Source: Octopus bimaculoides (taxonomy: Eukaryota). From it: DNA of 64,000 nt. Position numbers and translations under genes: made by a program. Below, in pieces: positions 1 to 40,588 of this stretch (the stretch's first letter is position 1; each line of letters opens with the position of its first letter). The stretch is from assembly GCF_001194135.2 (NCBI RefSeq), contig NC_068990.1:88774286-88838285 (forward strand). The letters are read 5' to 3'. Below the pieces are notes generated by a model. The model searched no databases. It was not told where the DNA came from and saw only the letters and a program-made list of their open reading frames with translations.

Positions 1-199
1 GATGTACCTGAGAAAAAATTGTGGAAAAAGAAAAACGTAACAGCAGAAGATTGTAAAGAAAAATGTTTGTCTGACAGAAATTGTTTATCATTTGAAATAA
101 CAAAAAAAAGTAAAAAATGTTACTTATCAAATCAACTTCCATATCCCTTCATGAAATTACTGCCAACCAAAGATAGAGATTACTACCAACGAATAAAAT
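1..199 (+). CDS. Exon A1 (partial), PAN/Apple type A
   Basis: Frame 1: DVPEKKLWKKKNVTAEDCKEKCLSDRNCLSFEITKKSKKCYLS...RDYYQRIK. PAN pattern CxxxC..C.SF..C; donor T|GTAATT at 199/200. Confidence 0.85.
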
Positions 200-3100
200 G
201 TAATTATTCTTTGTATTTTATCACTGGAATTTTCTTTTCCATTATTTCTGAAATTTATGATTCCATTTGTACTTCATCATCATCATCATTTAACATCCGC
301 TTTCCATGCTGGCATGGGTTGGATGGTTTGACAAGCTGGCTTTGCTGTATGTTTTGGTATACTGGATGTCCTTCCAAACAACAACCACCCCAGAGTGTGG
401 GGTTGGGGTATGCAGTGACTGGTAGAACTTGGGCCAGTAGAGGGGGTAGGGGACATCAGGATAGCAATGATACAGTGAGCAAGGCAATGAAGACAGGATT
501 GGAAAGCAAAAGATATGCATAAAGCATCAAAAAGATGAAATGTGAGGAAGAGGAGAGATGTTGTTTGGTTTGTTGGGGTAGGGTGTGGAAAAAGTTTTGT
601 TGCTTTTACATGTAGGTGGAATGCACAGTGCTCTCAGAACTCAGTTTCATTGAAGTAGGCAGGTCTTCTCAAGAACCTCATGTCACCAGACATCTCAGTC
701 CATTGTCATCTCCTCTATGATGCCTAACATCTTAAGATTAGTCCTCACTACTTCATCCCATGTCTTCTTGGGTCTCCATCTTCTACAGGTGCTATTCACT
801 CTCAGTGATCAGCACTTCTTTATACAGCTGTCTCCATTCATACACATATGTCCAAACAAATGTGCTCTTCTCTCTCTTTTGTAATAGCAGCTGCAAAATG
901 CCAACAAAAGTACTATGAGATAGACATCTCTAACAAAAAAGAGATGTTAGCCCAGGCCCACAAACTCATAAAAGAGAAAAAAACCTAGGCTAACCTTGCA
1001 CTCCCAGCCAAAGTGGAGGCAGAAATTGAGAAGAGGATCGTAAAGTATAGGTGCATCTCAGAGCAGTCTCAGAGAGCAGAACAACCCTCCCACTTTCAGG
1101 TGCCCGACGTTTTGGTACCATCTCAGTCCTTTTTAAAACAGAAGAGCTGGTCATGAAGCATTCGGTGGGACCCTGCAAAACTGACCAGCTTATAATCTAC
1201 CCATCCTACATGGGCAGAAGAACAATAAAAGTTCAAGTATCTGGAATAACACCAGGTATCAACATATGGTGGCTCATGGGATGTGTGATCGCAGAGGGTA
1301 GAAGGCCTCATTGCTTTACTTGTGATGAAGCAACACACCTACAAGCGCTCTGCCCTCAGCAAATAAGTACAAGGGTCCCGTTGCAGAAGTCAACCATAAA
1401 AACCAACACCTCACAACCAAGCTCAACAACCCCCCCTCTCACAAACAAGCACACAGAAAAAGATACATATACAAACACAAATTCACTTTCACACAGAGAG
1501 GAGGCTGTTGCTGCAGACACTAGTTCTACCACATTGAAGAATGATGATGAGGGGGAACAGAGTAAATAAAAATAAAACGAAAAGTCACAGAAGTGAGACA
1601 TCTTGTCCTGCACCAAAACAAGATGTCAAAGAAGCACTCATACCCACAACAATTGCAGATACTCAGACAACTCCTACATTATCACAATCATCAACTAAAG
1701 CACCAAAAACCCCACTGCAAACTAAAAAAAATCCCAAAAGGTAACTCACACCACAAATACAACAAGAACAGCAACAAACAATGACNNNNNNNNNNNNNNN
1801 NNNNNNNNNNNNNNNNNNNNNNNNNNNNNNNNNNNAGTTCATGATAAGCTCTACAGTCAGACGGGTTTGTATGAGATGTATGCAGAGCAACGAAACTATT
1901 CTGAAAACTCTCATACAGTGTCCATGCATTGCTGACTTGTGGAGCTTTGTTGAACAGTTATTGTCATGTGTAGGACAGATCTAGCTATCATCTGAGTCTA
2001 TCAGAAAGATCTCGCTGTCTCCTTTCTTTGGCCCGGAAGGACAAGCACTTTTTCTGTCTGGTGGCTATGGCAAAAGGGGTCGTGTGGTGGATACAATTGA
2101 AAGGTTTGAAGACAGATACCTTCCTCTCCAGCCAAGACCTCATTGACTTTTTCAGGTTCCATCTGAAAAGGATAGTGAGGCTGGAGAGGGAGGTACTGTC
2201 ACCCAGTAAGTTTGTTGAAAGGTGGGTGAATGTGGCCAGAATAGCCCATGTGAATGGGCCTATTTTAAGTGTGTGCCTGTAGGCCAGATAGAATGAGGAG
2301 GAGAGGGGTGCTTACCTTATGTTCCTTTGGTGTTAGGGAGTCCAAAGTGTGTGAGTTTCCTTTGGTTACCTCTCAGTGGAACTCCCCCTTGTTGCGGGAG
2401 TACAGTATTGGTTTAATCTCCTTGTTAATTGTTGTGGGGTTTTTTTTCTGTTTGCACATTTAACCCCACTGTCCCTCATCTGTGTATCATCCTTCATGCT
2501 TTGTGTCAGCCCTGGTGGCCAATAGAGAATCATCATCATCATCATCATCATCATTATTATTATTATTATTATTATTGATTTGACTCAGGTTTGGTCTTAT
2601 TCCTGGCATCATTTATGTGGGCAGCAGGTACTACTTGTAACCATAGGTACCCACTAGCTTTCAATAGTCTTTCAAGTCCAGGAACTTTTTTTGTATCACC
2701 TCATGTAACAAATAGGCCATTTCAGAATTATGCACCACATGCATTATAATGTTTAATGAGTGTGTGTGTTTGTGTATGTGTGTGTGTGTGCACGTATGCA
2801 TCTGTTTTGAGGGTGGGTATAAAATGTAATATTTATTTTCTTTTTTTTCTTCCAGTTAACGGTCACAAAATTAAGCTTTCTAAAGTTAGCATACCTGGGC
2901 AGGATGCTTTAAGACAGCTTAAGAATATGAGCTTAGATAAGTGTGATGAAGCTTGCTATCAACATCCAGAATGTAATTCTTATGAGTATAATGAGAAAGA
3001 AAAGCTCTGTAATTTGAATGATGCTACTCAGTCAACTGATAAACTTAAACCCAACAATGACAATTGGGATACTATCATCATTGATACAGGTCAGTAGAGT

Positions 3101-6100
3101 ATTTTATTTTATTTTTATGTGCATGTCTGTGCATGTCTTGTGGAAAGCATTGGCAATGATAAATCATATTACAGTACTTCAGACTCATGGAGTGCTGTGC
3201 ATAAAATATATTGTGCTTTTTGTGTGTGAGTGACAGCAGAGTACTTGAGAAGAACCATACATAATCGCAGCAAAAATGATGTTCTAAAATCATTTCATTT
3301 ATTCTTGTGCATGCTAGGCTCTGCCCCTAAGCTAATGCTGCTTCATCAAGCATTCCCCAAATCTCATTGCACTAACTTCACCTTAACACCTATCCCTTCA
3401 TCACTTCTCTATTTGTAGCACAAATTAACACCTGCAGTGACTTGAGAGCAGAGTTCGCATATATCATTTCCCCCATCCATTCTTTGTGCTACCAGGTTCC
3501 GCCTTCCCTTCCCCCATCCCCTACTGGTACCACATCCATCCTTCATTCTTGTTATCTTCCCTTTCCACACTATTTTCATTGGTCACTTCCTCTCAGTCAC
3601 TTCACTTCTCTCTCCCTCTTCTCTGCTATACTCCATCATAACACTTCACATATTTGCTATCCACCAACCATAAGTACCCCAATATCTCTTTCTCCAATAC
3701 TGGAACAAAGTATGGCTGAACTTGGGATCATGCGGAGAGAATACAAACTCTTAATTCATATGCTACAAATGATTGTAATATTTAGGACTATAAAAATCTG
3801 CAAGGCCTTCTTAAGATTTAAAGGATAATGTTTAATAGGAGATGCTTTCCTTCATAACCTTGCTACCATGTAGGTGGCTGGTCAAAATTTACCCTCAAAT
3901 TAAAAAGAGAAGGAGAAGAACATACATACATACTTTTTTATATGTATGTTTGTATGCAGATGTCTTCAGATTGTTTCACTCAATACTTCTGATTGTAAGA
4001 TTGTCATCTCTTTATTCTCACCCTCCTCCAAATATACTCTCACCCTTGGTACCAATTTCTGCTTTCAATTTCAGATTACACCAAAATTAACTGTGGGCCA
4101 CCAAAAGACATTGTTGGTGCTGAGAAGTCCTACAATACTACCACCTATAAATCTGAAGTGATCTACACTTGTCCAGAAGGAGACAAGCTAAAGTCAATAT
4201 GTAAAAAGGATAGGAAATGGTCTCCAGTAAATTCTACATGTAAAGGTAATGTAAATAGCTTCTGTTTTGTTGCCACTGTCAGGGTAATTTTATTTTATTT
4301 TCATGCTAAATGTCTTTGTCAGATGAAGTCTGGCTGATTCTGACAACTTACAGTGTTTGTAGCTGGTGGAAGAGACAAAGGAAGCTGTCCTCAGACCAGA
4401 TACCACCCCAAATGCTTGCAACAGAGTGGACATCATTGACTTTTTCCAAAGGCGAAGTATTAAAGTCTCCCAATGAAAAAAGGGAAATATGGTAGACTGT
4501 TCCCTCCAGAAGACATCCATACAGTTTCCATTTACCAGATTTCATCCTTAGTTGTGAAGCAAATTTTTAACCAATTTTTAACCACATAACCAAGATTCCA
4601 CCCAAGACCACAGTATTTTGAAGTAACCTCCTTAACCTCACAGTCATACCAAGGGTATCTGTGTAGATCTCTTAATTTCCAACTTGACCTTTTTCATATG
4701 ATGCCCCCCCACAAGTCCTTCCTCACTAAAATTCAGCAATCCTTTGAAATAGCCTTCCAGTGCTCTAACAATTCTTCTAATCCACCATCCACCACACTTA
4801 ATTATAATAAATGCAATTATTATTAATGATGGGTTTGATTTAATTTTTGATGGCAGGAGTTCAATCTTTACCCTCAACTTCAGTATTCGAATGGTACTGA
4901 ATTTTATCAATACCTGAATGGCTAACAGACAAAGTTGCATTTGAATTCAGAACATAAAGAACCTGAATACATAATGCAACAGGATTTTGCCAACGTTCTA
5001 ATCATTCTTTGAGTGAACAATTCTTAATTATAGAAATAATAACAATGATTATTAACATATAAGAGCACATGATATACACTTAAAAAAGGGATGATGATGA
5101 TGATGATGATGACAATGGCAACAATAATGATACCAATGTCTACAGGGAGATTTTTTTATATCACCAATATTGTTGAGCTTGCCATGCAGCTTGCAAGGCT
5201 ATAAACCCCAAGGGAGAGTTGGGACAGCTTTATGTTAAGGAATGAGGGATTAAAGTGAGGTAGAAGGGGATAGTGGGGCAAAGCAGATTCTTGTGGGAGA
5301 GAATGATTAACAGGAGCTGCAATTAGACAGATATTAGAGATGAAGTGTCCAGGTGACCCCTGAAAGTAAGTAAAAATGGGTGGTGGATTTGCATGATTGT
5401 ATGAGGTGGAGGAGATGAGGGGATGCGGAGGCAACATGCAACCGTAAAATATTAGGTAATATTGAAGAGCAAGCACTGATCGTTCATAAGTTGGGGAAGA
5501 GAAAGGGATGCAAAAGAGTGTGGGTGGTGTTGAGAGCAAAAGGATAGTAATAATATCAGTCTTCTCTTTTGCTCATTCCATATTATTCCTCTTTTACTTA
5601 ATTTTCTTCTCAACACATTTGCACTTTCTATACAGGCACACTGATACTGCACATTCATTAGAGCACACTAGCTTCATTCCTCTCTAGTCTTTGCATATGG
5701 CCTTCATCTTACTGTCATGTTGTATAGCTGGTCAAATACAAGCAACATACAATCTGCCTTTCACTTGTTGTGAGAGGCCTTTTGTTTCCACCAGAGGTTA
5801 TAGCTTACTGAACTTACTCCATCCTATTATTCTAGCAACAATACACTTTGAANNNNNNNNNNTTTGAGAAAATTCAGTTCCTGTGTGCCCAGTGCACTTC
5901 TGATGAGTCCATATGTTGCACTGGATACACCATATGGAATTCCTACCAACACCTTTCCTATATATTGAGCAGAGCACACACATAATATTCATGCAACATT
6001 GGTATCAATTTCTGTTCTTAATTTCAGTTTATGCAAAAATTAACTGTGGCACTCCAAAGGAAGTTACTGGTGCATCAAAGTCCTACAAAACCACCACCTA

Positions 6101-9100
6101 TAAATCTGAAGTGACCTATACTTGTCCAAAGGGAGAACAACTAAAGTCAGTTTGTGAAAAAAACAATGAATGGACTCCAGTGGCAGAAGCCTGTAAAGGT
6201 AATGTAAATAGCTCATCTCCTGATGTTTTTGTCTATGTAATTTTGTTTTATTTTTGTATTAAATGTGTTTGTCAGAGGAATACTAACTGAAAATATGACA
6301 AGTTTGTCAGTGTTTGTGGCTGTTGGTTGGGAAGAACTAGTTATCCTAAGACCAGAGATCTTACATATGCCCACAACAGAAAGTGGGCTGATCTATGGAA
6401 AGTAGTATGAACAGGAATGATAATGAGAGGGAGAGGTAACTGGTAGTGCCATAGGTGAGGATGGAGTATGTATTGATTCTGCTCACTGACTTCAGCAGCT
6501 AAGTTGTACCATGTACATATGGACTGTAAAGATGAGGATGGGATGCAATCCTTTTGAATGTAGAATAATCTCTGTCTAGAAACTGTTTAAGAAACCCAAC
6601 ATCAAAGATCACCCTGAACTTCAACGTCAAGTGTCCTCTCCAATTATTGCTCTCTGAGCTACAGGTCTATGCACTTTAATAGCCATCCACTCAAGCCATT
6701 TTTACCACTCTCATCTTGCTTTCAATAATTTCCTTCTTTTCCATCCTTCCCTTCTTTACAAGTGAAATTTAAAAATGCAGATGAGGGATTGACCAAGGAG
6801 GGAATCACCATTGTCTGACATTTCAAACTCATTCACTGCACAATCTCGTTTGCTATAGCTACCAGACAGAGGTAAACTACTTCCTCTGTCCAGATAAAGA
6901 AGGGTTTGAGGTAATCATTCCACACATAATAACAGGTGGTTTTTAACATAACTTCATGACCCAGATATGTTTGGATGTGGAATGAAAGCATGCAAAATGA
7001 TTTTGTTTTATTGCATGCATCTCAAAGAGCTCTGTCCTAGCACTTCATTGACTGTAGATTTTATTTTGAACCAGGAGAGCCCTTTGTTAGCACTGCCAAA
7101 ACAAGGACTTAAGGAAGTTTCCCTATGTTATTCCCTGAACAAAAAGTCCTTCAAAACAAACTTAGCAAATCATTGTCATTGATGACCAAAGGAACCATGA
7201 GAATGTCTGCTTTATCATGCCATTAATTCTCAATAGATTGTTAAAGTGGAACATCCACCAATCCTATTGCCTAGGTCATGTTTCATCCTGCATACTGTAT
7301 CTTCTGAAATCCTTTTGATTACATTAGATAATGTAAAATGCCTTTTTTAAAAGATGGCTGGGGATGATTGAAAGAAGTTTTGTTAATATTTCTAACATAT
7401 TGGGCATCCACATAGGGATTTCATTCAGCTAGTTGTGGTGATTGTGGTGGACAATACTTGGTCACTGTTTATATATTTATTACAATATCAAACATTCAGA
7501 TTGACTCACAGATGCTCAAGTTTGGCATAATGACATGAATCACACAAGTGTCGATAAGTGGGTGGCCCAGGCATTTCATGACATCATTGTTTCTGCGGTG
7601 ACTAGATTTTAAAAGCCATGACTGCCACCTCAATGTAATCAATTATTTATCCATTATTTAGGGACATGGCAAAACATAATTAATGAAAGCAATGAGATCG
7701 TGTGAGATTCATGTCTTTCTCAAGGACACTAACTGTCTATTTAAAATGAACTGATTTAGATAGAGAATCAAACCTTGATTATTGACTCACCCTGCTCAGT
7801 CCATATTTATAATAAAAGGAATACTAGGGAAAAATTCTCAGGGTCACTTCCTGCGTGGATAACAAATATAGTTAATTAAGGTTTCACCCTCAGTAGGGGG
7901 TAAAATTATTATGTTATGGTCTTATTCTGGTCATGAAATTCAAAAGTTACAACCTTGTAAAGATAAACACTCTTTTTCTTCATTTCATTAAAAGTATAAT
8001 TTTAGTGAATTAAAATTTCTTAGCTTGCTACATTAAGTTGTGAATGTCCACATTGCTACATATTTATATTTATTCACTAGATTATGATAGAAAAGAATTA
8101 TTTATTTTTGTTTTCCCAGGAAAAACATTGTAAAAGAGTCAAGTGATGGGTTATAGACCTTGCCATTACTAATTACATTTAGTTACATCCTTTTACATTC
8201 TGGGTTCAAATCCCACCTGGATGTACTTCACCTTTCATACTTCTGAGGTTGATTAAACAAGTGCTGAAGTCAATGAACCTTTGTGTATTCTCACTGCAGA
8301 ATCCGTGGCATTGTGTTTATTATTAAAATTAGTAACCTCAGCAATGATTATAATTATTCTTGTATTTTAGGGTGATAGATTGACAGAATCATTAGAGCAT
8401 CAGACAAATTGTGATATTCGTTCTGGCTCTTTTAATGTCTAACTTCTAATCCTGCTGATGTTAACTCTACCCTTCTAGGGCCACTAAAATACAATACCAG
8501 TCAAGTTTATAGGCCAATTTGATTGTTTAACTCCTACCTCATATTTTTGTTGTTTTCTCTATATTAGAAATTATTACTATTGTTGTTATTTTCACTCAGC
8601 TAAATTTTCCTTTAATTCCAGTTGCTGAAATCCATTTTGTGAAAGTAAAAGATGCAGCTCTGGATGTATCTGAGAAAATATTGTGGAAGAAGAATGTAAC
8701 AGCAGATGCTTGTGCAAAAAAGTGTTTCGCTGACAAAAATTGTTTATCATTTGAAATAAACAAAGAAAATGGAAATTGTTACTTTTCAGAAAAAAATGCA
8801 GCTTCCTCCAAGAAAATGAAAACAGCCAAAAGCAGAGATTACTACCAACGAGTAAAAGGTAATTATTCTGTGCATTTTATTATTGCAATTCTCTTTTCCT
8901 CTTACTTCTGAAATTTGTGATTCCATTTGTAATTCATAATGTACAGACAACCATTTCTGTAAAGACATTGACATGTCTCTGTCTTTACAGAAAGACAGAG
9001 ACATATTCCTGAAAAACAAAGAGCAATATTAGGAAATGGAAATACTGTTAGGACATTCTCATAGAGAATGTGTTCCTCTTGAACGCTTTTATGTATACCT

Positions 9101-30100: not shown

Positions 30101-30869
30101 TAGCAGAGGGAAAAGGAGGGGAGGAAGTAGAATAAAAGTGAGCAACGAGAGGTAGAGAGAGAGAGAGAGAGACAGTAGTAGTAATGGTCAGAGGCGAAGG
30201 ACGAGTAACAAGAGATAGAGAGAGAGAGACAAGTAGTGACAGGTAGAGGGAAGAATGAGACGGGGAGATAGAAATAGAGAGAGTCGCGTTAGAAAAATAG
30301 TTAACTGTGGTGGTGGGGGGTGCAAATTTCAAGTTTGTTTCACTTGATATCTTTTGTTCTAAGGCAGCGAGCTGGTAGAAACGTTAGCATGCCGGGCAAA
30401 ATGCTTGGCGGTATTTTGTCTGTCTTTATGTTCTGAGTTCAAATTCCACTGAGATTGACTTCGCCTTTCATCCTTTCGGGGTTGATAAATTAAGTACCAG
30501 TTGCATACTGGTGTTGATCTAATCAACTGGCCCCCCTCCCTAAAAATTCCAGGCCTTGTGGCTAGAGTAGAAAAGAAAAGAATATCTTTTGTTCTTAATT
30601 TGTCATTATCTTGTCGTTTTCAATCTCCTCCTAATATACATGCACTATTACTGTCAATTTCTTTTAACAGCTTCACCTACTGCAGAAGTTAACTGTGGAC
30701 CTCCAAAAGACATTGATGATGCAACAAAGTCCTACAAAACCACCACCTACAAATCAGAGGTGACCTATACTTGTCCATTAGGAGAAAAGCTAGTATCAAT
30801 ATGTGAAAACAGCAGTAAATGGAGTTCAGTAGAGACTCCTTGTGAAGGTAACATATATAGGTTCTCTCT

Positions 30870-30910
<41 letters not shown>

Positions 30911-33067: not shown

Positions 33068-33122
<55 letters not shown>

Positions 33123-33753
33123 NNNNNNNNNNNNNNNNNNNNNNNNNNNNNNNNNNNNNNNNNNNNNNNNNNNNNNNNNNNNNNNNNNNNNNNNNNNNNN
33201 NNNNNNNNNNNNNNNNNNNNNNNNNNNNNNNNNNNNNNNNNNNNNNNNNNNNNNNNNNNNNNNNNNNNNNNNNNNNNNNNNNNNNNNNNNNNNNNNNNNN
33301 NNNNNNNNNNNNNNNNNNNNNNNNNNNNNNNNNNNNNNNNNNNNNNNNNNNNNNNNNNNNNNNNNNNNNNNNNNNNNNNNNNNNNNNTACAAAAAAAGGT
33401 GGATTTTTTTGTATGATTGTGTATAGAGGAATATATTATTTTGCTTAAAAGAGTTCCAACACTGTCTGTTTTTTATGTTTTATTTATATTCCTGCAGAAC
33501 TAATGTGGGGTATAGAATATGGAATATACAATATATAATATAATATACAATATATAATATAAAATAAAATAAAAATGGATGGCACCATGAAATAAAGTAT
33601 TGAATGTAGATGAAATATTGAGTGTTCAATATAAAGGATCAAATATATAAATATATAAATATAAATATATATATATAAAGGCGACTCGAGTTTCAGGGCT
33701 ATTTCCCTTCGTCATGGCCGGTATGACAGTCTTTAACAGACTGTGGTTCACTC

Positions 33754-33786
<33 letters not shown>

Positions 33787-33787
33787 G

Positions 33788-33830
<43 letters not shown>

Positions 33831-36800
33831 TGAAGTTGCCTAGTAATCTGCAAGATTTAAAATTGTTCATTTAAAACAAACTATGCAGCAGATGCCTTCT
33901 AATATTTGACACATATGTGCATGTATAAAACGTGATTTTTGTTTGTTTTTTTCTAGTTCATGAAGACTTTATTGTATTTAAAAAAGCTCGCATACCAAAA
34001 CGTGATCAATTCCAACGGCTTGAAGATGTAACTGTAAAAGAGTGTAAAAAATCTTGCAAGAAACATGCAGATTGTACTTCCTTTCAGTACAAAAAGAATT
34101 CTAAAGTCTGTAGTTTGAGTAATGTGACTCACTTGACTCTTCAGATTAAACCTGACAATAAAGATTCGGATATTTACATTACTAGCGCAGGTCAGTAGCA
34201 TACTTTTATTTTATGTTTTGTGTGTGTGTATATGCAATATATATATATAAGTTAATAAATCATATGGTATACACCTGGTAGTTTACCAGTAAAGCACATT
34301 CCCTTTCTGTATTCCTTGGGTATTTGATTAACGAGAGACAGAAGATGTAAGATACAAGAATGTAGTAATCAATAAACATCCTCATATCTTACATCTTCCA
34401 TCTCACTCATTAATCATATATATATATATATATATATATCATCATCATCATTTAATGTCTGCTTTCCATGCTAGCATAGGTTGGACGATTTGACTGAGGA
34501 CTGGTGAACCAGATGGCTACACCAAGCTCCAATCTGATCTGGCAGTTTCTACAGCTGGATACCTTTCCTAACGCCAACCACTCCGAGAGTGTAGTGGGTG
34601 CTTTTTATGTACCACCGGCATATACATATATGCACACATATTGAAATGCCTTAACATTGTTAAGGCATATTTCAGTAATTCTGGTTCACTCTATGTTGTG
34701 CACAACACACACACACACACACATTATAGTCCTCCAAGCTATAAAATATGCATTTAAGGCTAGATACCCATGTGAACTACTGTATAACAATAACCTCATT
34801 TTAAAAGCTGAATCTTTTGTAGAATTAGAAAAGAAATTTTAGGTGTGGAAGCAAAACCTAGAATCAAAGGACTCAAAGTTAACTTAGCAAACACTGAAGT
34901 TTTAGTAAGAAAACAGATAGCACTCTACTCCCATCAGGAAAATTGCTTTGGTATGTAGAAAAGCAGTAGCTAGATATTCCATACAGTGTACCTTGTACAA
35001 ACTATGAATGTGTAAGAGGTACAATGAAATTACAGACAGGTTAACAGAGAAAGTAGACTTTGTATGTAAAATACCCAATTTTTCTCTCAAATCAGTTACA
35101 CTCTGTCATATATGAACTCTGACATTAACCATCCATTGGAGCATACTGGCTTCTTTTCTTTCAAGCCTTTGCATATCCTCAGTAGTCACAGCCCATGTGT
35201 CACTGCCATGTAGCATAGTTGTTCATACGCAAAAGCAAAAGGGAATAAAATGGCATATGTGTGTTTTAAATCTCTACTTAAAATTTTATATTATTATTAT
35301 TTTACAGAACCTACTTCATGCAAAGAAATGAAAAAGTGTGGCAAAAATGTAACTGATGGAGAATACTGGATCTACCCCTCTGTTCTTAATCATAAAAGAT
35401 TAAAGGTTTACTGTTACAATATGAAAACAGATACTCCAAAAGAATATATCACCTTACCACATGAAAATTTTGCATCTTTATCAACATTGAAACCACTCAA
35501 GATATGTGCGAAACTCTTTAACAATAGAATAGACAGACCAGGGAAAATTGTATTTCGGAAAGTTCGAATTTTCCCACAGGTAAATGTTTCATTGTTTGTT
35601 TTATTTTCATGATGTTTCTTATAAATATGAGAAATTAGGGATTTGTTTATCAAGAAATTTTATCCTTTAGCACAATTTTAGCCAAGAAATCTAATTTGGC
35701 AAACTTCAGAAGGAAATAAAAATATTCACTAGAGTTAGTACAATAGTAACGTTGCACTAGCTAAATCTGGATATACAGAGAAAATTGAAAGTATTCCATT
35801 TAGGTGCTTCTCTAAGTAAAGCTGAACAGATATGTAACCCAACATATGGACTTGTGAATGCTGTCAGACATGCTAATGATAAAAAGATGGATAAATGTAG
35901 CAATGTTAATGATAGTAATAACATAGGAATCCGCAGAAGACTAGAAGGAAGAATCGTTTTATTGAAAATAACCACACAAAAAAAATGAACAAAAAATTTA
36001 TTGTCATACAATTAACAGTTTCTCTAATGCACGATATGAGACACATGCAAAGTAAGCAAACAACATAAACATCAGGAAGTTTATAGAAATATACAAGTGG
36101 AACTACACAATAAGAATGTAAATTGATTAATTATGCATACATTCAAATGTTTATACAGTTTAATGTCCACAGGATTACACATACACTCTAATGTTTACCC
36201 AAATACATAGATTTTACACCATACACACATACATGAAAGCATGAAAGAATTTGGCTGCAGCTGTGGAAATTTCAAAGTTTACTGAATTTTTTTTTAATTT
36301 GGTGTATTAATGTAGCTTTCCAAGCTGAATCTCAGGAGATATTTCACTTTTTTCAGAAAAATTTTTTAAAACAGTTATTGAGGTTTAAAGTTTGATAATT
36401 TTCACCCAATCAGAAAGCAGGATTTGGCAGCTGTCATTTTGTGCGTGATGTTTTAATATGAATCAACTTCTCCTATACACACAACATATAACCCTTCATA
36501 ACTTTTTAATTTTTTGGAATTTTAGAAAAGTTTTGAGAATTTGCATTCTACACTCAGGAATTCATACAATTATGCAAAAACCAAACAGAAAATTGAGGGT
36601 TGTGTGATTTAAGGCCTATTTAGCATCAATGAACATAAATTAATATTTATTAATTAAAAATTAACAAACATCCTTTACAGCTGTTACAATTCCAGACCTT
36701 CAGAAAATTAACTACTTAAAAGCCAAATCACTTCACAGGTAGATACAGATATACAAAATAGGTGTTCAATTCCTGCATGTTGAGCAAATGGCTGCAATCC

Positions 36801-37192: not shown

Positions 37193-37224
<32 letters not shown>

Positions 37225-40200
37225 NNNNNNNNNNNNNATATAATATTTACATACATATATATGTGTGTGCATGTGTATGAATATATTCTTTCTGCAGCTG
37301 TATATAATGTCGGTATGTGTGTGTTTGTACACACACACACACACAATTGAGCTAATCATGATATTTATCATCATTTTTTCTGTCTATAGGATATGAGTGT
37401 TGACAGACATGATTTAACATTCTCAAATCGAGGAAATGGCAAAATAAAAAGCAGACAAGGTTTCGGTGATGCTGGAGATTGTTTGTATAAGAAAAAAGCT
37501 TACTGTTTCAGTAAAGGTTCAATGATTGTAAACCTGCAAAACACTGGCCTAGTCGTTGGAGATATGGTATGATGATTTCCCTTTTATTGTTGTTAATTTC
37601 ATAAGTTCAAATTTTATACATTTTATTTTACTTGGTACAGTCAAATGTGTAGATGATGAGTACACCTTTCCAAATCTTACAGCAACTTATAAAGAAATTG
37701 GGTATATTGTTCAGTAAGGTGTATGTGTAATGTCTGTGTGTGTATGCATGTGTTGTATATATATATGTAGATATGCATTCATTCCAGCCTCGCCACTAAC
37801 CTTTTTTCTTCTTTCCAATCATCTTTTCTCCTGTTTTATATTTTTCTCTTCCTTTTACCTACATTATTTCTTTGTATTTTATTCTGTATTTATAGTGTTT
37901 CACATTATATATATATAAAGTCTAACTGTATTTATCTGTATTACTAGTGCCATATCAGCTTCATCTGAATTTCTCTTATAGCTACTCTTGAAGATGTAGG
38001 CCTTGCCCCAAATGAAGAGGTTGGAGCTTAAGTTCAAATTCATTCAAGCACTATTATGTGTTTTCTATACTGAGATTATCTAGCTCTCACCTATTGACAG
38101 TGTGTGTGTGTGTATAACAGAGAGAAAGCTGTCAAAAATCCATAAGTTAATAAAGTTGTGTATTCATTAAGAGTAGGTATATTAATATTGGTAAAATATT
38201 AGTAGTAGTCATAAACGTTAATATGCTAACAAGAGATGGGCCCTGAACACAGACAATTTGAGAAGACTGGAAAGAAATGAAATGAGCATGCTCCATTGGA
38301 TGTGCAATGTAAGTGCACATGAACAACATACCAAAATGTGCTGAAAGAAGAAATTTGGCATAAGAAGAATCAGTAGTGTGCTGGTATGGACATGTGATAT
38401 ATATATGGATGAGGACAGCTATATAATGAAGTGCCAATCACTTAATGTCGTTGGAGCTTGTAGAACAGAGAGATATATGACAAAATGGTGAAACCTGATC
38501 TTGAACCCTAAGTCTCATAGAGAAGAGGACAAAAGACTGGGATAACTGGTGATGTGTAGTTCTTGAGAAGACCTGCCCACCTTGACAAAACTAAATTCTC
38601 GAAGCACTGTGTATGTATATATGTATATGCACAAATGAGCACCTTGCCCATTCTCCTCCTCCTCCCATCAATCCATTTCTCACACTCCAAACCTCCCTTG
38701 ACATCACTTATTTTTCTTGTTACCCAAAATCATTTCACTTGTTAGCCAGTCTTCATCCATTACTATTGTTTTCTCCACTCTTTGTTATATTGGTCATTCC
38801 CCTGCAATGAAACACCAAATACTCCCTCCTCATGGCCTATGCCAGCCTCTCTTCCCCTCTACTACTGCTACCTGTCTGACAACACATCATCTCTCTCTTG
38901 TCTCCTGATGTCAACTGTATCATTGTTACTATCCAACTGCTCCTCCAATTCTCTCTTCTGCATTTATCTACCTTCCTCAACTCCTGCATCAGTGGTTATC
39001 CTCCTCCTATTATCCACCACTCTCTACATCCACTTTTTAACCTACTCAATGGAAACCTCAGTAAGCTATAAAGAAAGCAGAGACATACTGGAAATACTAG
39101 GAGATGGTTGGAGTAGTCTATCAAAGATGGCTAAGACTTGACTGTTACAGCACCAAGAGTGGAAAAATACTGATTCCAGGAACAAGAGATAGCTCACAGT
39201 GCAAAGGATTTGTGATCCAACAGAGGAGGATCACAGAATGAAGGTGGTAGGGCTTGACTACCAGGAACAATGGACACAGTAGGATGAGGCACTCAAGCAG
39301 CCACTGTACTGGAAAGAACTCTGAAGCACTGATCAGGGATGGTTGTCCTTCCCTTTTCATGCTGTCACCAACCTCTTGCCAACTTCAAATAACCTTAAAA
39401 TATGGGGCAGACTCATCCAGCAAGCAGTATGGAGCAACTTTTTGCACCCTAAACTACATTTTGATCAGATGCCCCAGGGCACTGAGGGAAGGCCAATACA
39501 AGTGAGATGTGACTGAACTCAGTGGAAGGACAGAGTTGATATTTCCCACCAGGTAAAGAAAACAAAATATTAGGACATCATTGACAAGGCCCTTGTCAAG
39601 GGATGGTATGTGGCCACATTCCCCACTGAAGGGGGCTGTCATAGCTTTCTCACTAGATCTGTGTGCTATTTCCAACAGAAAATAGGTTTGGAATGCAGAC
39701 AACTGAAGAAATCTATCAAGGAGAAAGACATGGCAGTTGAAACAAGCTCAAATGGCTAAGGTTGAAAAGAGATCGAAAGTGGAGCCCGTCAACAGGTGAA
39801 GACTAGTTCAGTCCCCATTACCCCACTCAGGTAAAGTGTACAGTGCAAGGGGTGAAACACTTGTGACCCTGAAATACTTACTGACAATACAGCAATGGAT
39901 TTAGAAGAGCTTGCAAAACATCTTAGTAGCTCCTGCAGTTATTGCATACCACAAATCATTTATAATGTTTACTTCACCTAAGGATTATGTAGGCTGAATT
40001 GTCATGGTTGGAATACCTTTGTTTTCTTTTTTTAAAGTTATTACATATCTAAAATCTCGGGAAGAATGAAGTATCAGGATTACAATGTGTGATGTGTCTT
40101 ACTCAGAGATCCAACACAAAATCTGAACTCATGACCTTATAGTTTGTAGTTCACATGATTTACGTCACTTCCATTGGGATTCCTAAACATCTTTTTTTCA

Positions 40201-40588
40201 AAATGTTATTTTATATGATTATTGTAACTTCCTGACCATCCCACCCCTTTTTTATAACTTCAGGTTAAATGGGAAACATATGGGGTACAGACACGCATAA
40301 ACAGTTTAATGTACTCTGTAAATAGGCAAGTAGTGACAGCTTCATGTGAAGGAAAATGTGGTGGATGTAAACCTAATAAGTTTATAGTGCAACTTAGTTC
40401 AGATGGTAAGTGAAATAAATTTCATCTCTATATGTTTTTATATCATGCATTAAGCTCACTAAACTCCTTATCAGAGCCAGACTAAAGCCAAACGATATCC
40501 TAAGCACTATTGAACATTCGTATTTCTTCAATTCTTTTCAGACCATTCTCATAAGCCAAAACTCACAATTATATTAAATATACTGTAA
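1..40588 (+). CDS. Large multi-exon gene (5' end upstream of window) encoding a probable extracellular mosaic protein: 14 PAN/Apple + 8 Sushi/CCP + C-terminal GON domain
   Basis: 26 exons reconstructed by hand with polypyrimidine-AG acceptors and GT donors. The 22 domain exons are all phase 1-1 and join without stops; about 5,250 coding nt are visible. No signal peptide or start codon is in the window. Confidence 0.85.
273..890 (-). mobile_element. RTE-clade LINE 3' fragment with (ATG)n tail
   Basis: Minus strand reads degenerate ...FGHM..N.DSCIKKC.SLRV...RPKKTWDEVVR.NLKMLG...EKT. The 3' terminus is the complement of catcatcatttaacatccgctttccatgctggcatggg. Confidence 0.6.
990..2578 (+). mobile_element. 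Degenerate Tx1/L1-clade non-LTR retrotransposon (ORF1 zinc knuckle, ORF2 C-terminus, 3' UTR, microsatellite tail)
   Basis: ORF 1051-1569 has CFTCDEATHLQALC (CCHC knuckle). 1850-2282 reads CMRCMQSNETILKTLIQC...LWSFVEQLL and AMAKGVVWW..., typical L1/Tx1 ORF2 C-terminus. (CAT)n(ATT)n tail at 2529-2578. Confidence 0.7.
2856..3089 (+). CDS. Exon B1, PAN/Apple type B
   Basis: Acceptor ttttcttccag|, donor CAG|GTCAGT, 234 nt. Reads ...LDKCDEACYQHPECNSYEYNEKEKLCNLN...WD. Confidence 0.88.
4075..4245 (+). CDS. Exon S1, Sushi/CCP domain
   Basis: tttcag| ... AAG|GTAATG, 171 nt. DYTKINCGPPKDIVGAEKSYNTTTYKSEVIYTCPEGDKLKSICKKDRKWSPVNSTCK; 4 Cys plus Trp CCP pattern. Missed by the ORF track. Confidence 0.85.
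5700..5995 (-). mobile_element. RTE LINE fragment (PHD-like Cys/His insert)
   Basis: ORF 5798-5992(-): CSIYRKGVGRNSIWCIQCNIWTHQKC. Sits about 35 nt upstream of the S2 acceptor. Confidence 0.55.
6028..6198 (+). CDS. Exon S2, Sushi/CCP domain
   Basis: atttcag| ... AAG|GTAATG, 171 nt. YAKINCGTPKEVTGASKSYKTTTYKSEVTYTCPKGEQLKSVCEKNNEWTPVAEACK. Confidence 0.85.
8370..8580 (+). mobile_element. Old degenerate SINE upstream of exon A2 acceptor
   Basis: gacagaatcattagagcatcagacaaa...ttctaatcctgctga...ttaactctaccc...; decayed version of the young SINE at 30361. Confidence 0.5.
8622..8858 (+). CDS. Exon A2, PAN/Apple type A
   Basis: ttccag| ... AAG|GTAATT, 237 nt. AEIHFVKVKDAALDVSEKILWKKNVTADACAKKCFADKNCLSFEINKENGNCYFS...RDYYQRVK. 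Confidence 0.88.
9421..9757 (+). mobile_element. Helentron-associated non-autonomous element (HINE/DINE-like)
   Basis: ctgtttgtttgtcc...gatatctcaagaaccactggatggattttgatgaaactttcag; 3' end ccttggtgcaggtttgcgctctctgagtgctcttgtt with a small hairpin at 9736-9750. Confidence 0.4.
9800..9968 (+). mobile_element. tRNA-related SINE (octopus-type), 3' part
   Basis: ctgagttctaattctgccaaagtcgacttctcctttcatc...aaataagtaccagttg...ggccttgtaccgaaatttgaaa; same family as 30361. Confidence 0.6.
10290..10520 (+). CDS. Exon B2, PAN/Apple type B
   Basis: tttttccag| ... CAG|GTTAGT, 231 nt. ...LKECENSCQQYVGCNSYQYNAEAKLCDLSNVTQ...WDIYLINP. Confidence 0.88.
10633..10930 (-). mobile_element. RTE-derived 3'-end element inserted in a (TA)n tract
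   Basis: catcatttaacatccgctttccatactagcatgg...ggatgcccttcctaacgccaaccac; roughly 85% similar by eye to 34439-34620. Confidence 0.6.
11054..11224 (+). CDS. Exon S3, Sushi/CCP domain
   Basis: ctttcag| ... AAG|GTAAAT, 171 nt. YKKVNCGPPKDVIGAKKSYKTTTFKSEVTYTCPEGEKLKSVCKEDHKWSPVVSACK. Confidence 0.85.
13790..13985 (+). mobile_element. Old degenerate SINE upstream of exon A3 acceptor
   Basis: tagaatcatttgagcatcagacaaa...atcctgctgatgttaactttgccc; paralog of 8370-8580. Confidence 0.5.
14042..14281 (+). CDS. Exon A3, PAN/Apple type A
   Basis: ttccag| ... AAT|GTAATT, 240 nt. TKIHFVKVKDAVLDVSGKTLLHKKNITADACAKVCLSDKTCLSFEINKGNKECYLS... Confidence 0.88.
15051..15387 (-). mobile_element. Hsmar1-like (cecropia subfamily) mariner 5' end with TIR
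   Basis: Minus strand has TIR TATTAGGTTGTCAAGAAAGTTCTTGTGG at 15387 and ATG at 15196: MDKKQIHTIFLFQFKLGRKAAETACDINDAFGPRTTNERTAQWWFKKF, very close to the recalled Hsmar1 N-terminus. Confidence 0.82.
15400..15825 (+). mobile_element. Scrambled mariner transposase fragment
   Basis: A C-terminal piece (HQ.DAPAH-like) is followed by N-terminal HTH/linker ...LGMTKISAWWVPHLLTPDQ (mariner WVPHEL motif). Confidence 0.72.
16078..16678 (+). mobile_element. Mariner transposase C-terminal half and right TIR
   Basis: ETKRQSMQWKHPSLPAPKK...KVMASVF...FHQDNAPAHKS...FELVDHP with frameshifts; ends cctatgaacttttcaaccaaccctcgTA. Confidence 0.82.
16785..17018 (+). CDS. Exon B3, PAN/Apple type B
   Basis: ttttctag| ... 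CAG|GTCAGT, 234 nt. ...LKECGHACHQNPGCNSYEYNKKDMLCDQSNATHLTQ...WDTYIINP. Confidence 0.88.
17590..17860 (-). mobile_element. Penelope-like element GIY-YIG endonuclease C-terminal fragment
   Basis: ORF 17597-17791(-): GPYINGSGHCKLCIAEQAKIL, the Y...C.LC..E...I motif of PLE endonucleases. Confidence 0.5.
17960..18260 (-). mobile_element. SINE (second octopus-type family)
   Basis: cttttacttgtttcggtcattttgactgtggccatgctggagcactgcc...acgacgggcttcttccagtttccgtctaccaac; head portion related to the + strand copy at 55955. Confidence 0.6.
18509..18679 (+). CDS. Exon S4, Sushi/CCP domain
   Basis: atttcag| ... ACG|GTAACA, 171 nt. NSEIKCGPPKDIVGAAKDYKSTDYKSEVTYTCPADETIKSTCEKNNKWTPVPPICN. Confidence 0.85.
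19237..20030. other. Assembly gap (794 N) hiding the acceptor and first ~29 nt of exon A4
   Basis: Run of N. Sequence resumes mid-exon at DAVLDV, which lies 29 nt into the paralogous exon A3. Confidence 0.9.
20031..20238 (+). CDS. Exon A4 (5' end in gap), PAN/Apple type A
   Basis: DAVLDVMGKKLLKNKKVTTETCIEKCLSHKNCLSFEMTKSGKCYLS...RDYYQRIK; donor C|GTAATT. Confidence 0.85.
20554..20787 (+). CDS. Exon B4, PAN/Apple type B
   Basis: ttttcccag| ... TAG|GTTAGT, 234 nt. ...LKKCNESCQRYPECNSYQYNEKDKMCKLTKATH...WDTYFLNL. Confidence 0.88.
21330..21500 (+). CDS. Exon S5, Sushi/CCP domain
   Basis: ttccag| ... AAG|GTAACA, 171 nt. DYLEINCGPPNDVTGSVKSYNSTTYKSEVNYTCPEGEKLNSVCEKDNKWTPVASVCK. Confidence 0.85.
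21560..22065 (-). mobile_element. RTE LINE 3' fragment
   Basis: Minus strand reads MNEDSCVKKCHTLAV...GRPRKT-like...VVKHDLRTLGL. Confidence 0.5.
22325..22495 (+). CDS. Exon S6, Sushi/CCP domain
   Basis: ctccag| ... AAG|GTAATG, 171 nt. YAHINCGNPKDVASALKSYTTTTYKSEVTYTCPKGEKLKSTCEKDNKWTPVASACK. Confidence 0.85.
22797..23010 (+). mobile_element. Old degenerate SINE upstream of exon A5 acceptor
   Basis: gagagaatcaacagagcatcagacaaaatg...aattctgctgatgtcaact; paralog of 8370-8580. Confidence 0.5.
23060..23299 (+). CDS. Exon A5, PAN/Apple type A
   Basis: tctctag| ... AAT|GTAATC, 240 nt. IKIHFMKIKNAVLDVVGKIILSGKNITEDDCAEKCLSDEKCLSFEISKKGGKCYLS... Confidence 0.88.
24671..24904 (+). CDS. Exon B5, PAN/Apple type B
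   Basis: tttattcag| ... CAA|GTCAGT, 234 nt. ...LKECNKTCQEYPGCNSFQYNEEAKLCDLSNVTQ...WDIFVLNP. Confidence 0.88.
26039..26209 (+). CDS. Exon S7, Sushi/CCP domain
   Basis: tttctag| ... AAG|GTAACA, 171 nt. FTQVNCGSPKSVINAKKFYKTITYKSEVTYICPGGEKFKATCKDNNKWDPIIPSCK. Confidence 0.85.
27380..27540 (+). mobile_element. Old degenerate SINE upstream of exon A6 acceptor
   Basis: agcatcagacagaatg...agttcaaatcc...; paralog of 8370-8580. Confidence 0.45.
27593..27832 (+). CDS. Exon A6, PAN/Apple type A
   Basis: tattctag| ... AAT|GTAATT, 240 nt. SQIHFVKIQDAILDVPGKTLADKKNVTANDCAKQCLSDKTCLSFEINKQSGKCYFS... Confidence 0.88.
28160..28335 (-). mobile_element. Degenerate SINE
   Basis: atttcaaattttggcaca...atgaaaagcaaagtcaaccctggcagagtttgaagttagaatgtaa; reverse complement of the 30361 family. 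Confidence 0.45.
28907..29140 (+). CDS. Exon B6, PAN/Apple type B
   Basis: ctctag| ... CAG|GTCAGT, 234 nt. DDELLIFKRTSIPGQDTFGRLKNIELKECHRVCHQNPGCKSYEYNDRTKSCDQSNATHLTQNLQPNKEGWDTYIINP. Missed by the ORF track. Confidence 0.88.
30361..30581 (+). mobile_element. Young full-length tRNA-related SINE with 14-bp target-site duplication
   Basis: aaggcagcgagctggtagaaacgttagc...ggccttgtggctagagtagaaaag, flanked by ATATCTTTTGTTCT at 30347-30360 and 30582-30595. Confidence 0.82.
30671..30847 (+). CDS. Exon S8, Sushi/CCP domain (second in-frame acceptor possible at 30686)
   Basis: ttttaacag| ... AAG|GTAACA, 177 nt. SPTAEVNCGPPKDIDDATKSYKTTTYKSEVTYTCPLGEKLVSICENSSKWSSVETPCE. Confidence 0.82.
30870..31265 (-). 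mobile_element. CR1-clade LINE 3' end with (ATT)n tail
   Basis: Minus strand reads ...KQHSSHDFRIHFFTLRVAEVWNKLPASVVSCRRTASFKTSM..., the CR1 FF..RV...WN.LP..VV motif. Tail lies about 23 nt after the S8 donor. Confidence 0.7.
31294..31600. mobile_element. Foldback/MITE-like element with ~120-bp inverted arms
   Basis: Arm 31345-31465 (tttggagtaaagatttttactaacataatatggcagtcctggtttagg...) is the near-perfect reverse complement of 31477-31600. A second copy lies at 41749. Confidence 0.68.
31645..31850 (+). mobile_element. Old degenerate SINE upstream of exon A7 acceptor
   Basis: cagaatcattggagtatcagacaaaatg...ctgagttcaaatccagctgagataaactttg; paralog of 8370-8580. Confidence 0.5.
31915..32154 (+). 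CDS. Exon A7, PAN/Apple type A
   Basis: actctag| ... AAT|GTAATT, 240 nt. IQNHFATVKEAILDVKGKILWNKKNVTKEACLEKCWSDKNCLSFEINKENGDCYLS... Confidence 0.88.
32490..32830 (+). mobile_element. Penelope-like element GIY-YIG endonuclease fragment
   Basis: LKENNITTNIKWEVIDHEPSYLNGSSICSFFAVEKYHTI matches PLE LK..NI...I.W.I....Y......C.LC..EK..I. Confidence 0.52.
33123..33387. other. Assembly gap next to a (TA)n microsatellite
   Basis: Run of N preceded by a long TA repeat. Confidence 0.9.
33680..33719 (-). ncRNA. Degenerate minimal type I hammerhead ribozyme motif (Penelope type)
   Basis: Minus strand GGC-C(A)UGACGA-AGGG-AAAUAG-CCCU-GAAAC-UCGA-GUC-GCC: 4-bp stem II, palindromic stem III (ACUCGAGU), GUC triplet and 3-bp stem I, with one extra A in the CUGANGA core. 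Confidence 0.55.
33957..34190 (+). CDS. Exon B7, PAN/Apple type B
   Basis: ttttctag| ... CAG|GTCAGT, 234 nt. ...VKECKKSCKKHADCTSFQYKKNSKVCSLSNVTH... Confidence 0.86.
34439..34620 (-). mobile_element. RTE-derived 3'-end element in a (TA)n tract
   Basis: Same family as 10633-10930. Confidence 0.6.
34750..35075 (+). mobile_element. RTE LINE reverse transcriptase fragment
   Basis: ELLYNNNLILKAESFVELEKKF (mutated YADD), then WKQNLESKGLKVNLANTEVLV and a Cys-rich insert. Confidence 0.6.
35308..35579 (+). CDS. GON domain exon 1
   Basis: tttacag| ... CAG|GTAAAT, phase 1-0. PTSCKEMKKCGKNVTDGEYWIYP...LKVYCYNMKTDTPKEYITLPHENF...GKIVFRKVRI matches the SC.E...DGEY...K.YC..M....PKEY.TL motif of the ADAMTS9/20/GON-1 GON domain (recalled). 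Confidence 0.82.
37390..37566 (+). CDS. GON domain exon 2
   Basis: tctatag| ... ATG|GTATGA, 177 nt, phase 0-0. DMSVDRHDLTFSNRGNGKIKSRQGFGDAGDCLYKKKAYCFSKGSMIVNLQNTGLVVGDM carries the GON D.TF...FG.AGDC...G...NL..TGL motifs. Not in the ORF track. Confidence 0.82.
38190..38600 (+). mobile_element. RTE LINE ORF2 C-terminal fragment
   Basis: WALNTDNLRRLERNEMSMLHWMCNVS...WYGHV..MDEDSY.MKC...EKT. Confidence 0.62.
39050..39745 (+). mobile_element. Hero-clade (restriction-like endonuclease) LINE fragment
   Basis: QEQWTQ*DEALKQPLYWKEL*...LLPTSNNLKIWG; TLNYILIRCPRALREGQYK; then ...DKALVKGWYVATFP.E.GC, the Hero C-terminal motifs. Confidence 0.6.
40264..40405 (+). CDS. GON domain exon 3
   Basis: aacttcag| ... 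ATG|GTAAGT, phase 0-1. VKWETYGVQTRINSLMYSVNRQVVTASCEGKCGGCKPNKFIVQLSSD carries the GON terminal W...G...C.G.CG.C.P motif. Confidence 0.82.
40542..40588 (+). CDS. Probable terminal coding exon (DHSHKPKLTIILNIL*)
   Basis: Strong acceptor tatttcttcaattcttttcag| in phase 1; TAA at 40586-40588; AATAAA at 40646-40651. Confidence 0.5.

Follow-up and report, generated by a model that had tools for sequence, protein, structure and literature searches.

Exon organization of the PAN-Sushi-GON locus

The stretch of DNA examined here, hereafter called the window, is 64,000 bp long, comes from Octopus bimaculoides and maps to the plus strand of chromosome CM046610.1 (assembly GCA_001194135.2) at about 88,774,286-88,838,285. 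It is AT-rich (36% GC), contains ten runs of N and holds, on its plus strand, the end of a long array of exons encoding PAN (Apple) and Sushi modules, which closes with a GON domain. This PAN-Sushi-GON locus is our subject.

The exons were located as plus strand stop-to-stop frames, among which three Cys-rich types recur: two kinds of PAN exon (A and B) and one kind of Sushi exon (S). We counted seven A-type PAN, seven B-type PAN, eight Sushi and three GON exons plus a terminal exon, that is 26 exons, all on the plus strand (Table 1). The lengths of the array exons (237-240 nt for A, 231-234 nt for B and 171-177 nt for S) are divisible by three, and all of them are in phase 1-1, with two bases of a split codon at the start and one at the end. 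A polypyrimidine tract and AG stand on the acceptor side, AG...GT is found at every junction, and the donors read G/GTAAT or T/GTAAT in A exons, G/GTCAGT in B exons and G/GTAA in S exons (the slash marks the exon end). Each of the 22 domain exons encodes exactly four Cys. Their order is A B S S, A B S, A B S, A B S S, A B S, A B S, A B GON, the repeat unit being a basic A PAN, an acidic B PAN and one or two Sushi, with one exon per module. When the B domains were compared, B1 and B4 were 48% identical, B2 and B5 64% and B3 and B6 69%, against 30-48% for the other pairs; by this pattern of identity the units make up a 10-exon higher-order repeat. A tblastn search of the window with the exon peptides found no extra copies except for a 5′-truncated A exon right after a gap of 794 N (A4).

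Table 1. Exons and associated features of the PAN-Sushi-GON locus, in window coordinates
Feature	Position	Strand	Remarks
A1 (A-type PAN)	1-199	+	5′ part cut by window start; donor T/GT, phase 1; 82% amino acid identity with O. vulgaris
B1 (B-type PAN)	2856-3089	+	phase 1-1, 234 nt
S1 (Sushi)	4075-4245	+	phase 1-1, 171 nt
S1b (second Sushi of unit 1)	6028-6198	+	171 nt; double Sushi also in O. vulgaris ortholog
A2 (PAN)	8622-8858	+	237 nt; PAN_1 1.2e-10
B2 (PAN)	10290-10520	+	231 nt; PAN_1 4e-08
S2 (Sushi)	11054-11224	+	171 nt; Sushi 9.7e-05, 23.1 bits
A3 (PAN)	14042-14281	+	240 nt
B3 (PAN)	16785-17018	+	234 nt
S3 (Sushi)	18509-18679	+	171 nt; final true exon of upstream RefSeq fragment
A4 (PAN)	20031-20238	+	acceptor and about 10 codons lost in 794-N gap
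B4 (PAN)	20554-20787	+	exon model
S4 (Sushi)	21330-21500	+	exon model
S4b (second Sushi of unit 4)	22325-22495	+	no N gap separates S4 from S4b
A5 (PAN)	23060-23299	+	exon model
B5 (PAN)	24671-24904	+	exon model
S5 (Sushi)	26039-26209	+	exon model
A6 (PAN)	27593-27832	+	exon model
B6 (PAN)	28907-29140	+	exon model
S6 (Sushi)	30671-30847	+	177 nt
A7 (PAN)	31915-32154	+	exon model
B7 (PAN)	33957-34190	+	most divergent B (30-38% to others); spliced straight to GON
GON exon 1	35308-35579	+	phase 1 in, 0 out; C..DGEYWIYP..C motif common to procollagen C-propeptides
GON exon 2	37390-37566	+	phase 0-0
GON exon 3	40264-40405	+	phase 0 in, 1 out; CGGC motif
Terminal exon, (E)PSSNGVKSCASLRRIQCSQSEDEC	41467-41543	+	stop TGA 41541-41543; used by RefSeq; 84% identical in O. 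vulgaris
AATAAA polyadenylation-type hexamer	41585-41590	+	42 nt past stop; putative, from sequence only
Last exon of the preliminary description, DHSHKPKLTIILNIL*	40542-40588	+	phase-compatible; absent from RefSeq and O. vulgaris models

A preliminary description of this DNA had reported at least 14 PAN/Apple and eight Sushi domains followed by GON, arranged in a strict A-B-S grammar over 26 exons that join in frame and of which the last would lie at 40542-40588. The domains and their number were borne out by our exon count and by Pfam. The grammar is looser than had been claimed, since two units have a double Sushi (S1/S1b and S4/S4b) and the last unit has none, and the conserved terminal exon, used by RefSeq and by the Octopus vulgaris model, is 41467-41543; we rejected 40542-40588, which is probably not an exon. 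The exons do join in frame, but because all array exons are in phase 1-1 any exon order would do so, and in-frame joining is therefore no proof of continuity.

The terminal exon encodes a short, acidic tail with three Cys, and the cuttlefish and limpet homologs of the protein end with similar acidic Cys-bearing tails. Between GON exon 3 and the terminal exon, an open frame at 40948-41190 (+) contains a long hydrophobic stretch, LIIVGLNVTIVAVIILCTWAILIILLTSICLIYYCV. As a candidate transmembrane exon it was discarded: it has no Pfam match, lies outside the RefSeq and O. vulgaris models and is probably due to chance. In the intron just before GON exon 1, an in-frame ATG at 35250 (35250-35307, +) would add MAYVCFKSLLKILYYYYFT to GON. 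It is conceivable that this ATG is an alternative start for a short GON-only secreted product resembling the small cuttlefish GON proteins; the MAYVCFKSLLKILYYYYFT peptide before GON is a poor signal sequence.

Domains of the predicted product

Pfam PAN_1 (PF00024) matched an A exon with 41.5 bits and a B exon with 33.4 bits (cut-off 21.4), and was found in six stretches of a 686 amino acid (aa) part of the product. Sushi (PF00084) matched over its full length (1-56 of 56) with 23.1 bits, barely above the cut-off of 20.7, and all eight Sushi exons carry the four Cys and the K/E-W motif. GON (PF08685) was matched from profile position 1 to 191 of 199 (E 1.1e-34, 120.6 bits, cut-off 22.6). When this domain was aligned with 32 homologs, five Cys (C5, C36, C67, C122 and C130) did not vary, and the motif CGG.CG.C was conserved.

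An AlphaFold2 model of A2-B2-S2 had a mean predicted local distance difference test score (pLDDT) of 87.8, and Foldseek matched it with a probability of 1.00 to the apples of factor XI and prekallikrein, MIC4, SML-2, HGF N and plasminogen PAp. Structure comparison in this way confirmed the PAN fold of the modules, on a structure that is itself predicted only. A search of the PDB sequences with the A-B-S sequence gave marginal matches only (E 0.014-0.1). The product contains 14-16% Lys, has an isoelectric point of about 9 and carries 1.2-1.6 N-glycosylation sequons per 100 residues, and basic A and S modules alternate along the chain with acidic B modules. Its sequence characterizes the predicted product as a secreted-type, disulfide-rich, Lys-rich and N-glycosylatable chain of domains.

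Gene models and assembly gaps

The spliced window query was 100% identical to RefSeq XP_014770611.2 ('uncharacterized protein LOC106869402 [Octopus bimaculoides]'), which our spliced exon model reproduces exactly, and the tail of an upstream RefSeq fragment was matched as well. RefSeq cuts the locus in the window into these two fragments at the 794-N gap (19237-20030). In the upstream fragment the last true exon, S3, is followed by a read-through tail (18862-19011), and XP_014770611.2 begins at an internal Met within A4 (ATG 20049). The O. vulgaris model CAI9728796.1 (4283 aa) has the C-terminal series A B S S A B S A B S A B S S A B S A B S A B GON tail. Its 22 domain exons, GON and tail are collinear with those of the window at 84% amino acid identity, and a complete A4 is present between S3 and B4. 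This model was compared as a protein, and three DNA loci were read from its assembly (GCA_951406725.2), all without any N. The collinearity, with the complete A4, shows at the sequence level that the two fragments in the window are one gene, interrupted by the 794-N gap alone. Only about 10 codons, all of A4, are lost from the window through gaps.

The 10-N gaps at 9990-9999, 13029-13038 and 41978-41987 have the same sequence on either flank, with diagonal offsets of about 35, 136 and 47 bp and shared 14-mer runs of 17, 81 and 34, respectively. Given this duplication of their flanks, the three gaps are unmerged contig overlaps from which no DNA has been lost. The gaps at 33123 and 37225 are located inside AT microsatellites.

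Octopus annotations split the locus into many spurious genes that are either 'uncharacterized' or misnamed ('ADAMTS20-like', 'SVEP1-like'). The locus is already public in the form of uncharacterised annotation fragments, and literature searches for the LOC identifiers and for PAN+Sushi+GON in molluscs returned nothing usable and no paper on these loci.

Extent of the array upstream of the window

Upstream of the window, exons of these classes and in this orientation can be followed over at least 527 kb, to 88.248 Mb or farther. The array in O. bimaculoides spans at least 568 kb (88.248-88.816 Mb), the gene end in the window occupying 88.774-88.816 Mb. Models of 1133, 709, 761, 1865 and 4083 aa are annotated on CM046610.1 (+) at 88.258-88.46 Mb, and in the upstream loci that were read the A, B and S exons continue uninterrupted, between models as well as for 10 kb before the first model. 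For example, in a 43-kb stretch (L004), for which the tblastn mapping listed no gap, the exons run continuously across three models with the same A/B/S grammar as in the window. A naive test (AG/GT, no stop, four Cys) was passed by 73 of 82 exons, the failures being boundary offsets or exons cut by gaps. In all, annotation breaks the array into at least seven models, each starting in the middle of a domain, and GON is present only in the last of them. The O. vulgaris array is annotated as models of 4470, 861, 857, 3597, 4087 and 4283 aa. The annotated pieces total at least 11,300 aa in O. bimaculoides and at least 18,100 aa in O. vulgaris. Searching with a profile built from 18 A-B-S units yielded four octopus fragments only; arrays from squid or cuttlefish were not among the results.

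An orthologous stretch of 19 exons measures about 106 kb in O. vulgaris (OX597823.1) and about 36 kb in O. bimaculoides. This amounts to a roughly threefold greater intron length in O. vulgaris, with exons that correspond one to one. In one upstream O. bimaculoides locus (L002), part of a Sushi exon occurs twice (203-361 / 556-609), at a join resembling the contig overlaps of the window.

The repeat structure might be thought to be an artefact of assembly, caused by repeats that were collapsed or falsely duplicated across N gaps, in which case the order and number of exons would be unreliable. The ten N runs of the window, one of which deletes part of an exon, lend themselves to this explanation, as do the duplicated contig ends, which are unpolished joins, and the duplicated partial Sushi exon beside a gap in L002. 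However, no two copies in the window are more than about 86% identical in nucleotide sequence, the independent O. vulgaris assembly agrees one for one in the order and number of exons, and the same grammar is seen in the 43-kb stretch without a listed gap. Of all the explanations considered here, we give this one the least credence.

A tandem cluster of separate PAN-PAN-Sushi genes, encoding proteins of roughly 700-4500 aa and carrying GON in the last gene only, is an alternative reading, in which the window would contain the end of one gene followed by the GON gene. The array is divided into several models in RefSeq and in the O. vulgaris annotation alike, and RefSeq splits even the 43-kb stretch; small stand-alone relatives exist (GON-Sep-2 of 291 aa and limpet proteins of about 400 aa), and phase 1-1 exon arrays are easily duplicated as blocks. 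Against this, no model has a signal peptide at its start; all begin at chance Met codons inside domains, and their ends read into introns. Intact unannotated exons lie between models, the spaces between models (0.5-5 kb in O. vulgaris) are no longer than the introns, and the O. vulgaris model joins S3-A4-B4 across the 794-N split of the window. We consider a gene cluster rather unlikely. Most probably, gene predictors have chopped up what is a single transcription unit of at least 568 kb, comprising the whole array, and the encoded protein may be among the largest extracellular proteins known.

Evolution of the array exons

Rates of non-synonymous (dN) and synonymous (dS) substitution were obtained from the 43-kb upstream stretch and its O. 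vulgaris counterpart. Nineteen consecutive exons of this stretch have one-to-one collinear O. vulgaris orthologs, to which they are 86-96% identical in nucleotide sequence, as compared with 70-88% to their best paralog. Since orthologs are closer than paralogs, the repeats keep their individuality and do not undergo concerted evolution. For 17 ungapped orthologous exon pairs (1054 codons), dN was 0.072 and dS 0.100, giving a dN/dS of 0.72. Divergence was 7.4% in the exons and 7.3% in the intron flanks, the latter with about one indel per 100 bp. Nevertheless, the exons contained no stop codon, against 12.9 expected from an equal number of random substitutions, and had retained 66 of 66 Cys, against 54 expected; neither result arose in 5000 simulations. 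Exon length differences are multiples of three only, and splice sites are retained in O. bimaculoides, O. vulgaris and O. sinensis. Among the paralogous exons of the window, dN/dS ranged from 0.35 to 1.1, and their similarity reaches some hundred bases into the introns.

The lack of stops and the retention of Cys, in spite of divergence at the rate of introns, thus mark the gene as protein-coding, with a disulfide scaffold that is fixed and surfaces that are free to vary. Selection on its coding sequence is strong where frame, splice sites and the disulfide scaffold are concerned; on the rest it is very weak or else diversifying. The most plausible cause of the high dN/dS is redundancy of the modules, with weak selection on each of them; diversifying selection is the alternative cause.

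Equal divergence of exons and introns, a dN/dS of 0.72 and paralog values reaching 1.1 are, on the other hand, also what one would see in a decaying or unexpressed array of pseudo-exons left by runaway segmental duplication, in which just the last few exons would yield a product, a short PAN-PAN-GON or GON-only one. The in-frame ATG at 35250 could start such a GON-only product, and no transcript evidence was obtained. However, decay is hard to reconcile with the complete lack of stops and loss of no Cys, with length changes in multiples of three where the intron flanks carry about one indel per 100 bp, with splice sites kept in three Octopus species, and with the retention by each exon of its own ortholog. 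We consider a pseudo-exon array highly improbable.

The GON domain and its relatives in molluscs

A HMMER search with the GON domain gave 372 relatives. Among the 95 nearest GON cluster representatives, Reprolysin is present in four, PAN_1 in 18 and Sushi in eight, further partner domains being C-type lectin, kringle and F5/8C. By these counts protease-free GON is common in molluscs, and PAN is its most frequent partner domain.

The closest GON found, with 46% identity, is that of GON-Sep-2 from the cuttlefish Acanthosepion (Sepia) pharaonis (R4FJA6, 291 aa), a protease-free protein with the order signal peptide-Sushi-GON and an acidic Cys tail (..ECEEL) like that of the octopus protein, but with no PAN and no array. 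Its name reportedly fits the convention of the coleoid posterior venom-gland transcriptome survey by Ruder et al. in 2013. Literature searches on GON in cephalopod venom returned nothing usable. Two limpet proteins (Lottia gigantea V4AAD3/XP_009055358.1, 396 aa, and Patella caerulea A0AAN8JGS7, 411 aa) are organized as signal peptide-PAN-Sushi-GON, and Sepia pharaonis CAE1175485.1 is a PAN-Sushi-Sushi-GON fragment whose PAN is clearly of the B type. These three proteins share with the octopus protein the domain order, a C-terminal GON and a short Cys tail, and their GON domains are 33-46% identical to it. However, they have one PAN and one or two Sushi, whereas the octopus window alone has 14 PAN and eight Sushi, and the whole octopus array, unlike these relatives of about 400 aa, has hundreds of PAN and Sushi modules. 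A Sushi immediately precedes GON in the mollusc relatives and is missing from the last unit in both O. bimaculoides and O. vulgaris (A7-B7-GON). From their distribution, both protease-free GON and the PAN-Sushi-GON combination are old and widespread in molluscs, and they are uncharacterised. Given that such small limpet and cuttlefish GON proteins exist, the octopus gene is a hugely amplified member of an existing, uncharacterised mollusc PAN-Sushi-GON family.

ADAMTS9, ADAMTS20 and Caenorhabditis elegans GON-1 have a C-terminal GON (PF08685) in common with the octopus protein, which, in the parts read, lacks their propeptide, Reprolysin, disintegrin-like, TSP1 and spacer regions. Indeed, Pfam matched neither Reprolysin nor TSP1 in the window model, XP_014770611.2, CAI9728796.1 or the neighbouring models, and GON is directly preceded by the PAN exon B7, with no TSP1, Cys-rich or spacer module between them. 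The name 'ADAMTS20-like' in the O. vulgaris annotation, which rests on GON alone, is therefore a misnomer. In ADAMTS9/GON-1, the GON domain works within the endoplasmic reticulum (ER), where it serves transport from ER to Golgi in a protease-independent way (PMC3338439).

When the GON profile was compared with the PDB, its first 64 positions matched procollagen C-propeptides (5k31, E 4.8e-6; 4ae2, E 3e-4), with the shared motif C..C..DGEYW..P...V.C.M. Pfam COLFI (PF01410) gave a partial, sub-threshold match to the window GON (20 bits against 26.2, positions 32-70 of 233). Like GON, the C-propeptide of fibrillar procollagens is C-terminal on very long secreted chains; their likeness is confined to the N-terminal third, and the residues of the calcium-site loop are not evident in GON.

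The preliminary description had seen in the locus a lineage-expanded, multivalent extracellular PAN/Sushi protein capped by a GON domain without protease, with an unfamiliar architecture and a signal-peptide exon to be sought upstream. This interpretation holds in part. The expanded, multivalent extracellular protein is supported, and so is the protease-free GON, as neither the window model nor the 4283-aa O. vulgaris ortholog has Reprolysin or TSP1. A GON of this kind is not unusual, only four of the 95 nearest representatives having Reprolysin. The architecture is new in that no characterised protein has it, but small uncharacterised mollusc proteins do show PAN-Sushi-GON. What had been described was the 3′ end of the array only: the array continues upstream for at least 527 kb, and the signal-peptide exon was not reached.

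Comparison with other PAN and giant modular proteins

The octopus modules share the PAN fold with the tandem apples of factor XI, prekallikrein and MIC4 (Foldseek E 6e-6 to 5e-5), and HGF N and plasminogen PAp superpose on the octopus model with a root-mean-square deviation of 2.3-3.4 Å over about 85 columns. However, they have four Cys (in 14 of 14 exons) as opposed to the six of apple domains, and do not belong to the factor XI/prekallikrein subtype. Neither factor XI and prekallikrein (four apples) nor Toxoplasma MIC4 (six), Sarcocystis SML-2, HGF or plasminogen has the alternation of two PAN types with Sushi, and none has GON. In all these proteins, the PAN fold binds proteins or carbohydrates.

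The alternation of two or three kinds of small disulfide module, repeated tens to hundreds of times, is a design also known from CSMD1-3 (CUB-Sushi) and from Drosophila Dumpy (EGF-DPY, about 23,000 aa). Dumpy has a ZP domain and then a transmembrane segment near its C-terminus, in the position taken by GON in the octopus protein, while the CSMDs, which lack an assembly domain of this sort, finish with several Sushi in a row, followed by a transmembrane segment and then a cytoplasmic tail. The octopus array is built of different modules, its homology with these proteins being limited to Sushi, and no ZP domain or transmembrane segment is found in the window.

Other elements in the window

Downstream of the PAN-Sushi-GON locus lies a CACHD1-like gene (47464-64000, +), whose 1431-aa product contains dCache_1 and CACHD1_C and which runs off the window. 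Its first exon (47464-48057) opens with the signal-peptide-like sequence MAVKLYFSIVRLVFLCTTLFICALA. Two copies of an interspersed repeat, at 39509-39892 (+) and 57216-57595 (-), are 73% identical over 390 bp; one of them lies in the intron between GON exons 2 and 3. Their open reading frames (ORFs; ..KGG.VA..P.E..C.SF......QKIGLE.RQLKK.IKE..) have no Pfam match. Related palindromic elements of about 230-260 bp, with 82-86% identity between their arms, occur at 31345-31600, in the S6-A7 intron, and at 41745-41977, where the element abuts the gap at 41978. They look like inverted-repeat elements of the miniature inverted-repeat transposable element (MITE) type.

Microsatellites of (TG)n/(CA)n, which translate as CVCVCV, are found at 2750-2800, 10150-10230, 17060-17140, 20490-20520 and 32170-32215, within 100-200 bp of several B exons and also after A7 and B3. 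These repeats may have promoted unequal crossing-over; alternatively, they may do no more than mark the points at which the assembly breaks. Ten other ORFs of the window, from both strands, gave no Pfam match, and Rfam and tRNA scans of the window were empty.

A candidate giant secreted protein

Positions 1-41543 (+) of the window are the 3′ end of a real, fast-evolving O. bimaculoides gene for a giant PAN-Sushi-GON protein of the secreted type, and we think it probable that its whole array is one transcription unit. The product would be a very long, multivalent adhesive or matrix fibre, similar to mucus or apical matrix, in which hundreds of PAN modules would bind glycans or proteins and the Sushi modules would act as spacers. 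The single C-terminal GON, together with the Cys tail, might nucleate assembly and/or enable ER export of this giant cargo, a role suggested by analogy with the action of ADAMTS9/GON-1 in the ER and with the C-propeptide likeness of the first third of GON. The near-neutral rate of the individual modules would follow from their being redundant, with hundreds of them in the chain, and since any stop or frameshift would delete everything downstream, including GON, we propose that the frames are kept for that reason.

Several observations weigh against this proposal. Neither the 5′ end nor a signal peptide was found, since the farthest upstream locus that was read already opens within the array, and the O. 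bimaculoides array was read in sampled stretches with about 320 kb lying between them. RefSeq splits the array within the 43-kb stretch for no visible reason, although no gap is listed there. No transcript, expressed sequence tag or proteomic support was obtained, as all the Logan-derived matches are individual genomic exons that read through into introns. Equal divergence of exons and introns, together with a dN/dS of 0.72, would also be expected of a weakly expressed, partly dispensable sequence. The role given to GON is an analogy, and the similarity of GON to COLFI spans only about 64 residues. A Foldseek search of the PDB with the AlphaFold model of GON (pLDDT 84.8) gave no significant match. 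The best hits (E 0.06) were N-terminal subdomains of fibrinogen-like domains, with no COLFI structure among the hits, and the rest of the modelled fold is a beta sandwich without a PDB match.

It would go considerably further to suppose that one gene encodes an extracellular protein on the scale of titin, of roughly 15,000-25,000 aa, in which alternative splicing of several hundred phase 1-1 cassette exons yields a somatically diversified recognition or adhesion repertoire anchored by GON. The isoforms would then differ in their sets of PAN and Sushi binding modules, each module being conserved individually and evolving fast. We regard this as unlikely. Immunity, mucus, and sucker or gamete recognition can be named as examples of settings for such a repertoire, with the same doubt attached.

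The locus presents an unusual selective regime, in which frame, splice sites and Cys are fixed while the remainder drifts at the rate of introns and each repeat retains its own ortholog. It further offers a natural opportunity to learn what GON, a poorly understood domain, does in the absence of an attached protease. If the array is indeed one gene, it would rank among the largest protein-coding genes, and its product among the largest secreted proteins, described in any animal, and it would be an innovation specific to the octopus lineage, amplified from a small ancestral mollusc PAN-Sushi-GON gene.

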